A DNA stretch of 64,000 nt from Salpingoeca rosetta (lineage: Eukaryota; Protista; Choanoflagellata): assembly GCA_033442325.1 (NCBI GenBank), contig JAWQFM010000036.1, positions 124,175 to 188,174 on the forward strand, read 5' to 3'. Every line of letters begins with the position of its first letter. Position 1 is the first letter of the stretch. The notes under the pieces were generated by a model, which was not told the DNA's origin, made no database searches, and saw nothing but the letters and a program-made list of their open reading frames with translations. A program made the position numbers and the translations under genes. Below, one piece after another: positions 27,252 through 28,932 of this stretch.

Positions 27252-28932
27252 ATGGACGTGGAAGCGGTGATTGAGGCGCATGATGGGTATGATGGGTATG
27301 AACTGACGAGTGTGGACGCTTGTGCCCGCAAATCGATGTCGCTGCTGATGCTGTCGTCGCTGCTGCTTGGTGTTGCCGCATCCTGACTTGTGATGTGTCT
27401 CTGCGCCACATCGTGGCCCTTGTTGCCATTGCGCTTATGCACGCTGCAGGCCTTTCACGATGGCGGAGATCGTGGAGGAGTGTGGCAAGGAAGTGGACGA
27501 ACGGCACGTGCAGGCGGCTCTGAACAAACTCGTGCACGCTTCAAAGGCGTACGTTGTCCCGTGTGCGTCTGCCTGCATGATGATGTACAGTGTTGATTTG
27601 TGCCTATGTTTCGCTGCATCTGTGTGTGTGTGTGTGTGTGTGTGTGTGTGTGTGTCTGTGTGTATGTTCGCGTGTGTGTGTGTGTCTGTGGCACATGGGT
27701 GATTTATGGCTTCCCCCTTGATGGCTTCGCCCTTGATGGTTCCTCATTGTCATCTTGTGTGCTCAACTGCTGTTGGCCGTGCTCTGTGATCCGCTTCAAG
27801 GCAACGAAAGTGGCTCAGCGCAGCTGGAACCAACGTGTATTGGGTGACAAGCAGAACACCCCGGATGCCGCCAAAACAACCAACACACACTCGCTCTCAG
27901 CCTTCCTCGGCCTTCAAAACGCCACAACGGTATGGCCAAGTGTGAGTGAGTGTGTGTGTTTTTGTGTGTGTGTGTGTGTGTCTGTGTCTGTGTCTGTGTC
28001 TGTGTCTGCGCTTGTCTGTGTCTGCGCTTGTCTGTGTCTGCGCTTGTCTGTGTCCGTCTGTCTGTCTGTCTGTCCGTCCGTCTGTCTGTGTGTGTCTGTG
28101 TACCTGTGTCTGTGTCTCTGTCTGTCCTTGTATCTACGTGCATGCACCACTTCATCCAACGCACGACTCAACGCTTACACCCTCACTGTCGCTGCTGCTT
28201 CGCTTCTTTTTCAGGTCAAGGCGATTGAAGAAACCCTTTTCAACGCCACGCCAAGCCACCTCCTCTGCCTCCACCCCCAACACAACTGGCCGACACCAGG
28301 ACTCGCTCCTGTCTGTATCAGAGGACATCAAGACATTGCAACAGCGAGTGGATCAACTCTCACAAGAGTACGTTGTATGCCTCTTGCACACACACGCACA
28401 CACACGCTTGCGATCGTGTGAAGGTATTTAGATCCTCGACGTGTGTGTATGCGTGCACACGAGTCCTGCCATTCGTTTTGTGATCCATGCTCACATTTAC
28501 TCTTCCATTCACGTCCTATCTTGCTGCGGTGGCACAGGTACAGCGCGGAAGAATTGGACACGCACATTGACAAGCTTCACACGTACAACGACCTGAAAGA
28601 TGTCGCACAAGCTGTCATGGGAATGCTCGGTAAGCACATGTACAGTGCATGTTTTGAATGCACACGTGCACGTGTGTACGTGTGCGTGTGCGTTTGTTTG
28701 CTTGGAATGAGTCTCTTCCCTCCTTCTCCTCCACTTGATTTTGTCTCCGCTTGAATCCATCGTCGTTCCATTTATTCATCATCATCATCATCATCATCAT
28801 CATCATCATCATCATCATCATCATCATCATCATCATCATCATCATCATCATCAATCACACCTCACAGCAAGCCAGGAAGGGCTGGCAACGCGGGCCATGT
28901 ATGAACGATATGACTTGGACCTGGCGGATTAA
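27252..28932 (+). CDS. SWI5: DNA repair/recombination protein Swi5 (Sae3) homologue with an N-terminal extension
   Basis: Six phase-consistent exons (27252-27286, 27450-27548, 27801-27929, 28215-28367, 28538-28629, 28868-28932). The C-terminus YSAEELDTHIDKLHTYNDLKDVAQAVMGMLASQEGLATRAMYERYDLDLAD* matches the Swi5 HIxxLHxYNxxKD signature. Confidence 0.9.

Follow-up and report, generated by a model that had tools for sequence, protein, structure and literature searches.

The SWI5 gene of the choanoflagellate Salpingoeca rosetta lies at positions 27252–28932, on the plus strand, of the window analysed here (the whole stretch of 64,000 nucleotides, contig JAWQFM010000036.1, positions 124,175–188,174). 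The genome has a single Swi5 locus, and its product appears to be a protein of 190 residues that consists of a 62-residue winged-helix domain (WHD), a basic, disordered linker of ∼50 residues and a Swi5 domain with two coiled-coil helices and a capping helix. The probability that this description is correct is put at about 0.8. Swi5–Sfr1 and Hop2–Mnd1 are the two conserved accessory complexes of the recombinases Rad51 and Dmc1. To our knowledge, the C-terminal coiled coil is the only part for which a resemblance between the two has been described. An earlier note, made from the letters of the sequence alone, had proposed that a winged helix like that of Mnd1 or Hop2 is fused to Swi5 at this locus.

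At the DNA level, the gene has six exons separated by GT..AG introns; all junctions are in phase, and the 190 codons end at a TAA stop (Table 1). The exon translations are exactly as quoted in the earlier note. RNA evidence comes from two raw stranded RNA-seq runs (X21 and X22) and two sets of RNA contigs, mapped on positions 27230–29100. The splicing of exons 1–3 to the Swi5 exons, which had been predicted from the sequence, is found in the RNA of both kinds. The joint across intron 1 (27285/6→27449/50) is present in raw reads of both runs (two and four reads), and the 561 nt contig X6 spans exon 1 to exon 6, this joint included. Raw-read depth within intron 1 is zero over 27293–27418. The joints 27548→27801 and 28367→28538, together with contig pieces, bear out the other introns. 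First mates map to the minus strand, which indicates plus-strand RNA, given the usual dUTP library. The database protein for this locus, PTSG_10846 ('DNA repair protein SWI5 homolog', 175 residues), joins exons 2–6 identically and begins at ATG 27460 within exon 2.

The donor site of intron 1 is tandemly duplicated within 27287–27304 (GGTATGATG GGTATGAAC). Use of the second GGTATGA donor, 9 nt downstream, would add three in-frame codons; the reads show the upstream donor only, with no use of the second.

At the level of predicted structure, the N-terminal domain was modelled with AlphaFold2 (AF2) from an alignment of 41 sequences, the first row of which is Choanoeca flexa residues 1–72. The model has a predicted local distance difference test (pLDDT) value of 88 and displays helices at 5–15, 22–30 and 37–49, a short strand between the first two, and a hairpin at 53–58/63–68. 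In the AF2 model of PTSG_10846 itself, helices 2 and 3 and the hairpin (strands 30–35 and 40–45) have pLDDT values above 90, despite the lack of helix 1. On these models the 62-residue domain is a canonical winged helix (H1-β-H2-H3-hairpin), as the earlier note had read it from the sequence pattern. A Foldseek search of the PDB places the winged helix of mouse Hop2 first (nuclear magnetic resonance structure 2mh2; E 5.5e-4, TM 0.78/0.87, root-mean-square deviation 1.3 Å over 64 columns), followed by the Fur, PerR, MarR and PadR regulators. In an exhaustive VIA search 2mh2 ranks second (Z 11.1, 64/64 residues, deviation 1.4 Å). An Atlas shape search returns generic winged helix-turn-helix (wHTH) clusters, and Hop2/Mnd1 is the sole eukaryotic cluster among the matches listed.

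The C-terminal half of the product is a true Swi5 domain. Pfam family PF07061 matches PTSG_10846 with 66.1 bits against a cut-off of 22.1, and exon 5 alone reaches 42.4 bits. Schizosaccharomyces pombe Swi5 (3viq_B) aligns to residues 112–171 of PTSG_10846 (E 4.7e-6); it is also first in a Foldseek search with the AF2 model, but with a weak E of 0.064. The helices of that model, at 98–124, 127–158 and 162–168, have pLDDT values of 93–97. The C-terminal aromatic-x-Leu is Y-D-L in S. rosetta, and its Leu (L171 of PTSG_10846) is nearly invariant; in mouse SWI5, F83 and L85 are required for functional interaction with RAD51 (PMC5573924). Charge, pLDDT and the Pfam score all agree with the previously proposed order of a basic Ser/Thr/Pro linker followed by a canonical Swi5 domain.

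The usual partner gene is also present. S. rosetta has a separate Sfr1/Mei5 gene, a single open frame of 303 codons (L006:874-1785, on G000:C3) that is Ser/Thr-rich in its middle and has the Mei5 domain at its C-terminus (G000:C3:984813-985067, 42.9–44.6 bits). Of the separate MND1, HOP2 and SFR1 genes that the earlier note had listed for checking, HOP2 and SFR1 are found, the former barely detected exon by exon; the same exon-by-exon search of the genome detected neither the Mnd1 HTH nor the LZ3wCH domain, and the exons are tiny. A wing-like stretch near the N-terminus of Sfr1 (D-V-K-R-K-T-V-K-T-S-K-G-E-E-T-I-V-Y-W) was considered as a possible winged helix that would make a Hop2–Mnd1-like pair with Swi5. 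It was rejected, as the stretch is non-significant (2.5 bits) and has no Pfam match. Since no WHD is seen in the Sfr1 of S. rosetta, there is no obvious WHD pair.

The N-terminal domain is not confined to S. rosetta. An exhaustive phmmer search with PTSG_10846 against 1.84 billion representatives found 464 Swi5 proteins, and many of the alignments extend into the N-terminus of PTSG_10846, starting 20–60 residues inside the target. With a domain profile, 43 of the 150 best cluster representatives are found to carry the N-terminal domain ahead of Swi5, so that the fusion is not special to the S. rosetta gene. Named carriers are the choanoflagellates C. flexa and Hartaetosiga balthica, the zoopagomycete fungus Piptocephalis tieghemiana and the amoebozoan Phalansterium solitarium; the remaining carriers, about 40 eukaryotic sequences, are from ENA and Logan assemblies. 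Queried with the full protein and then the 41-sequence alignment, a word-index protein search had recovered almost nothing beyond the gene itself, and phmmer was needed instead.

The conserved pattern of the domain is Y-L-x-x-x-x-E-P-K-T-L-x-E-I ... V-E-x-x-L-x-x-L-V-x-x-G ... K-x-L ... L-Y-W. Profiles built with the sequence in question left out recognize S. rosetta (25.8–32.4 bits, single-comparison E ∼1e-10 to 1e-12) and each of the named carriers. Within the S. rosetta gene, exon 2 matches positions 19–49 of the family profile with 30.2 bits, and the wing in exon 3 matches positions 52–68 with 14.5 bits.

The relatives vary in gene structure. Some are intronless single open frames on long contigs (L003:3001-3678, L004:3001-3747 and L009:2001-2585), unlike the six-exon S. 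rosetta gene. A choanoflagellate transcriptome protein (P0002, 186 residues, isoform 'seq2') has the wing only (T-K-I-F-Y-L-S-A-K), placed after an unrelated hydrophobic N-terminus; in its close relative P0004 the winged helix is complete. P0002 probably reflects intron retention, as does an S. rosetta isoform described below (X4).

Some indication of how the N-terminal domain has been distributed comes from a low-resolution tree, built on 85 columns, of 146 Swi5 domains. A well-supported clade of 37 WHD-less rows includes a gecko. Another clade, of 49 rows, has 35 that bear the WHD, and the choanoflagellates cluster. Piptocephalis, which bears the WHD, falls with ascomycetes that lack it (support 96). 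On the strongly supported branches the WHD state must have changed three times or more, and parsimony counts 15; losses may be over-counted, since many of the short rows without a WHD may represent just one exon of a gene that has introns. Judging from these sequences, the WHD–Swi5 architecture appears to be a common form of Swi5 in many eukaryotes, one that is old and was lost in model organisms rather than a new lineage-specific fusion. Its taxonomic range is partly known, as most WHD-bearing relatives are assembly-derived proteins, and this weighs against so general a statement.

Precomputed Pfam annotation of all the relatives lists PF07061 only and no winged helix, in agreement with the earlier expectation that the architecture is not already widely annotated. 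Full-text searches of the literature turned up no description of a winged helix on Swi5. The WHD–Swi5 architecture is thus widespread yet, as far as checked, neither annotated nor described.

What the domain binds is a separate question. The paired winged helices of Hop2–Mnd1 bind double-stranded DNA via eleven conserved basic residues, and their conserved Pro and wing aromatics form the interface between the two WHDs (PMC4402518). The winged helix of S. rosetta Swi5 has a net charge of ∼−4 (family median −3, range −9 to +4). Basic residues occupy one position of the domain in 88% of members, a second in 57% and a third in 41%, and no basic patch like that of Hop2–Mnd1 is found. Both observations weigh against a direct grip on DNA, and the 'DNA-binding Swi5' hypothesis of the earlier note is not borne out by an acidic domain with one well-conserved basic position versus eleven. 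The positions that are conserved in the Swi5 WHD are those of the Hop2–Mnd1 WHD–WHD interface.

The linker has the opposite character. It is disordered over ∼50 residues (47–97 of PTSG_10846), has a net charge of +10 in S. rosetta (median +6) and is 37–53% Ser/Thr/Pro. It contains two F-x-[ST]-P motifs, A-F-K-T-P and K-P-F-S-T-P. The latter (consensus R-x-P-F-K-S-P-A) is nearly invariant in WHD–Swi5 proteins, its P, F and P positions being at least 90% conserved in alignments A1 and A3. It survives in the WHD-less gecko SWI5 (XP_060107096.1, 176 residues), where the Swi5 domain and an F-K-S-P linker motif are kept and the WHD family profile finds no match. The motifs have [ST]-P with a basic residue nearby, which fits the [ST]-P-x-[KR] pattern of cyclin-dependent kinase (CDK) sites and makes CDK-type control possible; CDK control of Sfr1 has been reported (PMC11445502).

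The basic linker, possibly aided by the wing, would be the likelier DNA contact. Perhaps, then, the WHD is a protein-docking or regulatory domain that binds Rad51/Dmc1, Sfr1 or another WHD, or folds onto the basic linker, with any contact to DNA made through the linker and Sfr1. The odds of this are close to even. The contrast between an acidic WHD, with a single position basic in >80% of members, and its +10 linker speaks for such a role, as do the retention of the interface Pro and aromatic positions in place of the eleven basic residues and the conserved candidate kinase sites in the linker. The fold and its nearest relatives are nevertheless those of DNA binders, a conserved Lys/Arg lies in strand 2 beside the wing, and a local basic face is compatible with an acidic overall charge. 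That the WHD itself binds duplex DNA is accordingly given a chance, although a smaller one, nearer to one in three than to one in two; docking of a protein is at least as likely.

Kinship with Hop2 and Mnd1 is indicated mainly by sequence. A Pfam scan of the 41 N-terminal domains shows TBPIP/Hop2 WHD (PF07106) as the sole recurrent family, at E ≤ 0.01 in seven, while other families are singletons. The TBPIP cut-off of 22.8 is exceeded by P0008 (28.7 bits) and P0046 (23.1 bits), and Mnd1 HTH (PF03962) matches P0033 with 26.7 bits against a cut-off of 23.5. When ten of the domains were scanned in detail, TBPIP appeared at E ≤ 0.1 in eight and was the top match in six. The nearest relatives by sequence are therefore the winged helices of Hop2 (TBPIP) and Mnd1, in keeping with the Mnd1/Hop2 likeness that the earlier note read from the sequence and with the first place of mouse Hop2 in Foldseek. 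For S. rosetta itself the direct Pfam signal is weak: exon 2 alone matches TBPIP at positions 16–46 with E 0.042 (14.2 bits versus 22.8), and residues 1–50 of PTSG_10846 have no Pfam match. The kinship would thus rest mainly on the orthologues.

The Hop2 exons of S. rosetta show the same signature (L-E-Y-L-x-x-x-N-R-P-Y-N-A-S and L-x-x-V-L-A-K-M-A-x-D-G-Q-I-x-E-K-V-F-...-K-I-Y-F), and hhalign aligns the N-terminal domain with an S. rosetta Hop2 exon in register (P 6.8e-4). Common to the Swi5 WHD and the Hop2 exons is P-[KY]-[TSN]-x-x-[ED]-[IVL] ... L-x-x-L-[VA] ... K-x-[LF] ... [IVL]-Y-[WF]. At the other end of the protein, Swi5 has been found by HHpred and superposition to resemble Hop2 and Mnd1 alike, at their LZ3wCH end (Kang et al., 2015; PMC4402518). 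Swi5 was therefore already tied to this pair, and the 'architectural link' suggested in the earlier note is a reasonable one. With sequence evidence for the N-terminal domain and a likeness between Swi5 and LZ3wCH, the simplest reading is homology at both ends. Swi5, Hop2 and Mnd1 may then be full-length paralogues, derived from a single protein in which a winged helix at the N-terminus preceded a recombinase-binding coiled coil at the C-terminus, and the ancestral Swi5–Sfr1 of at least Amorphea may have had a WHD arm that most non-model eukaryotes, choanoflagellates included, have kept. This proposal is tentative and is held at somewhat less than even odds.

Several observations weigh against the kinship. 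In the VIA search a plateau at Z 9.5–11.3 ties Hop2 with Fur, MarR, histone H1/H5 and other wHTH proteins, and the modelled structure establishes the fold and cannot by itself single out Hop2. Pfam cut-offs are passed by only three of the 41 orthologues. A profile search of PDB sequences is weak, with Hop2 (2mh2) and LexA both at E 0.037. In 20 orthologues, the 25 Pfam families that occur most often do not include LZ3wCH (PF18517). The WHD-LZ1-LZ2-LZ3wCH architecture is also not reproduced, as a disordered linker of 50 residues follows the WHD and there is no LZ1/LZ2 coiled coil. In the profile search of PDB sequences the top rows were Peroxin-14, which was set aside as a coincidence over a 22-residue motif (PKTLNEI) and not a domain match.

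This raises the question of whether the domain is a generic winged helix that an early Swi5 gained by domain shuffling, with no special common descent with Hop2/Mnd1 and a likeness that stems from fold and eukaryotic composition. Unrelated wHTH proteins (Fur, PerR, MarR, histone H5, BlaI) do reach the same Z and TM as Hop2, the comparison with PDB sequences is not significant, and single members of the family also match MAGE, TrmB, DUF7342 and HTH_27. A language-model Atlas search of the domain gave noise-level matches (0.75), to prokaryotic wHTH clusters only, and was discarded. Such an origin is nonetheless unlikely, because TBPIP alone among the wHTH families of Pfam recurs (seven of 41 versus singletons), three orthologues lie above curated Hop2 or Mnd1 cut-offs, the signature is held in common with the Hop2 exons of S. 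rosetta itself, and the C-terminal halves are linked independently by HHpred and structure (PMC4402518).

The start of the protein can be placed in exon 1. In the known transcript no ATG precedes ATG 27252, since solely (CA)n lies upstream of it. The tripeptide P-F-T, which corresponds to P-x-T of the family with its near-invariant Pro, lies in frame upstream of ATG 27460; the exon 2 piece begins exactly at this Pro. Because the conserved Pro precedes ATG 27460 and exon 2 has no other in-frame ATG, translation must start in exon 1, and the reference model PTSG_10846 begins 15 residues too late. PTSG_10846 spans positions 22–68 of the 69 in the family profile, and thus the annotated protein is without helix 1, which is present in every full-length orthologue. 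Exon 1 is taken as coding on the strength of the splice joint, the reading frame and the requirement for a start codon.

Some points tell against the 190-codon model. The 683 nt RNA contig X4, from another study, retains intron 1, is continuous over 27269–27548 and has exons 2–6 spliced. Reading from ATG 27252 into the retained intron meets a stop after 44 codons, and a 175-residue product would be made; the downstream start in the annotation is probably due to this isoform. On its own, the exon 1 peptide gives no signal with the family profile, as helix 1 is poorly conserved. In addition, searches and folding used exon pieces, PTSG_10846 (P0001) and orthologues in place of the joined 190-residue model, and the 5′ end of the gene adjoins an assembly gap and is duplicated: window positions 27147–27568 (422 bp) recur 100% identical, on the minus strand, at G000:C1:3463026-3463447 (L012:1476-1897). 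That exon 1 is non-coding, the product being the annotated 175 residues from ATG 27460 and helix 1 a matter of chance, would agree with these points and with the reference annotation, but is very improbable given the spliced joint in reads of two runs, the zero coverage of intron 1, the in-frame P-F-T with no other ATG in exon 2, the helix 1 that every full-length orthologue has and PTSG_10846 has not, and the position of ATG 27252 as the first in the transcript.

The 422 bp copy extends from (CA)n through exons 1 and 2, with intron 1 between them, to the first 20 nt of intron 2. Both copies abut a gap of 100 N and their upstream flanks differ, the upstream neighbour of the C1 copy being a kinase-like gene with poly-Gln. 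Swi5 exons 3–6 were not found after the copy on C1. Redundancy in scaffolding probably accounts for the copy, which would then be no second gene; alternatively, the region was partly duplicated very recently. As 27147–28932 is gap-free, the coding model is unaffected by the duplication. The uncertainty falls on the promoter and 5′ untranslated region, because the gap sits in the (CA)n tract at the start codon.

Table 1. Features of the SWI5 locus of S. rosetta, in window positions.
Feature	Position	Strand	Description
Assembly gap	27047–27146		100 N, within the (CA)n microsatellite 26990–27250 that abuts the start codon; 105 bp upstream of ATG
Exon 1	27252–27286	+	Start codon and helix 1 of the winged helix; 11 2/3 codons; absent from the reference annotation
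Intron 1	27287–27449	+	163 nt, GT..AG; kept in one RNA contig (X4)
Exon 2	27450–27548	+	P-x-T-x-x-E-I motif and helices 2 and 3 of the winged helix; contains the annotated ATG 27460
Exon 3, 5′ part	27801–27852	+	β-hairpin wing (ends NVYWVTS); closes the 62-residue winged helix
Exon 3, rest	27853–27929	+	First half of the linker, basic, S/T/P-rich, disordered; A-F-K-T-P at 27910–27924; net charge +5; pLDDT 51–69
Exon 4, 5′ part	28215–28287	+	Second half of the linker; nearly invariant K-P-F-S-T-P at 28231–28248; net charge +5
Exon 4, rest	28288–28367	+	Swi5 domain, first coiled-coil helix; AF2 helix 98–124, Pfam Swi5 103–173 of PTSG_10846
Exon 5	28538–28629	+	Core of the Swi5 domain, H-I-D-K-L-H-T-Y-N-D-L-K-D; PF07061 7.5e-11 on exon 5 alone
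Exon 6	28868–28932	+	C-terminal capping helix of Swi5, Y-D-L at the position of mouse F83/L85; stop TAA

The introns of the gene are rich in microsatellites, with (GT)n in intron 2 (27620–27690) and (CAT)26 in intron 5 (28777–28854); intron 3 has GT/GTCT-rich repeats (27940–28120). The 3′ end of SWI5 is overlapped by a convergent minus-strand transcript. Reads of opposite orientation, with the first mate on the plus strand, are found over 28868–29100; over the last exon and the 3′ flank they are deeper than the SWI5 reads, and contigs of 1.3 kb start near 29000.

Swi5 proteins that have been characterized are small, as the earlier note had stated: 85 residues in S. pombe, 91 in Sae3 and 89 in mouse, with the Swi5 domain alone and no winged helix (PMC5573924). 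Human SWI5 is given as 235 residues in the same source (PMC5573924). The S. rosetta protein resembles S. pombe Swi5 (3viq/3vir), Saccharomyces cerevisiae Sae3 and mouse SWI5 in its PF07061 domain of two kinked helices and a capping helix, in the C-terminal aromatic-x-Leu and in the presence of an Sfr1/Mei5 partner gene. It differs from these proteins of 85–91 residues in having the 62-residue winged helix and 50-residue basic linker in front. With the WHDs of Hop2 and Mnd1 it shares wHTH topology, size and signature (conserved Pro, helix 3, aromatic wing), as well as a position at the N-terminus of a recombinase-accessory coiled-coil protein. The WHDs of Hop2 and Mnd1, however, are basic, are joined directly to LZ1-LZ2-LZ3wCH and form a juxtaposed pair, whereas that of Swi5 is acidic and is followed by a disordered linker.

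A further parallel is found in S. pombe Sfr1, the N-terminal half of which is a flexible extension that binds DNA and Rad51 and makes Swi5–Sfr1 fully active (PMC4402518, PMC7093153). The basic linker and WHD of S. rosetta Swi5 could act as a comparable tether. The Sfr1 extension differs in that it is on the other subunit, is intrinsically disordered rather than folded and has no sequence relation.

These features suggest how the S. rosetta protein may work. The Swi5 domain would pair with the separately encoded Sfr1/Mei5 to form a Swi5–Sfr1 complex, which would sit in the groove of Rad51/Dmc1 filaments and stabilize them. The winged helix, on its flexible basic tether, would provide an extra binding arm, like the WHD end of Hop2–Mnd1. 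Swi5, Hop2 and Mnd1 would probably stem from one ancestor with a WHD and a coiled coil, and the clade with the gecko (probably tetrapods) and the ascomycete yeasts would each have lost the WHD.

For the S. rosetta gene the immediate consequence is a correction of the reference model PTSG_10846, to which the first 15 residues are added. For the family, a Hop2/Mnd1-like winged helix on Swi5 extends the resemblance of the two accessory complexes to the whole architecture. No Swi5 characterized in biochemical work has the winged helix, and it points to a function of Swi5 that has been invisible to work in yeast and mouse. The shared architecture also provides a concrete hypothesis of common descent, one that is directly testable with recombinant S. 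rosetta or Choanoeca proteins. If full-length paralogy is true, the 'minimal' Swi5 found in yeasts and mammals would be derived by truncation, and the textbook division of labour, in which Hop2–Mnd1 captures double-stranded DNA and Swi5–Sfr1 only stabilizes filaments, would not be general.

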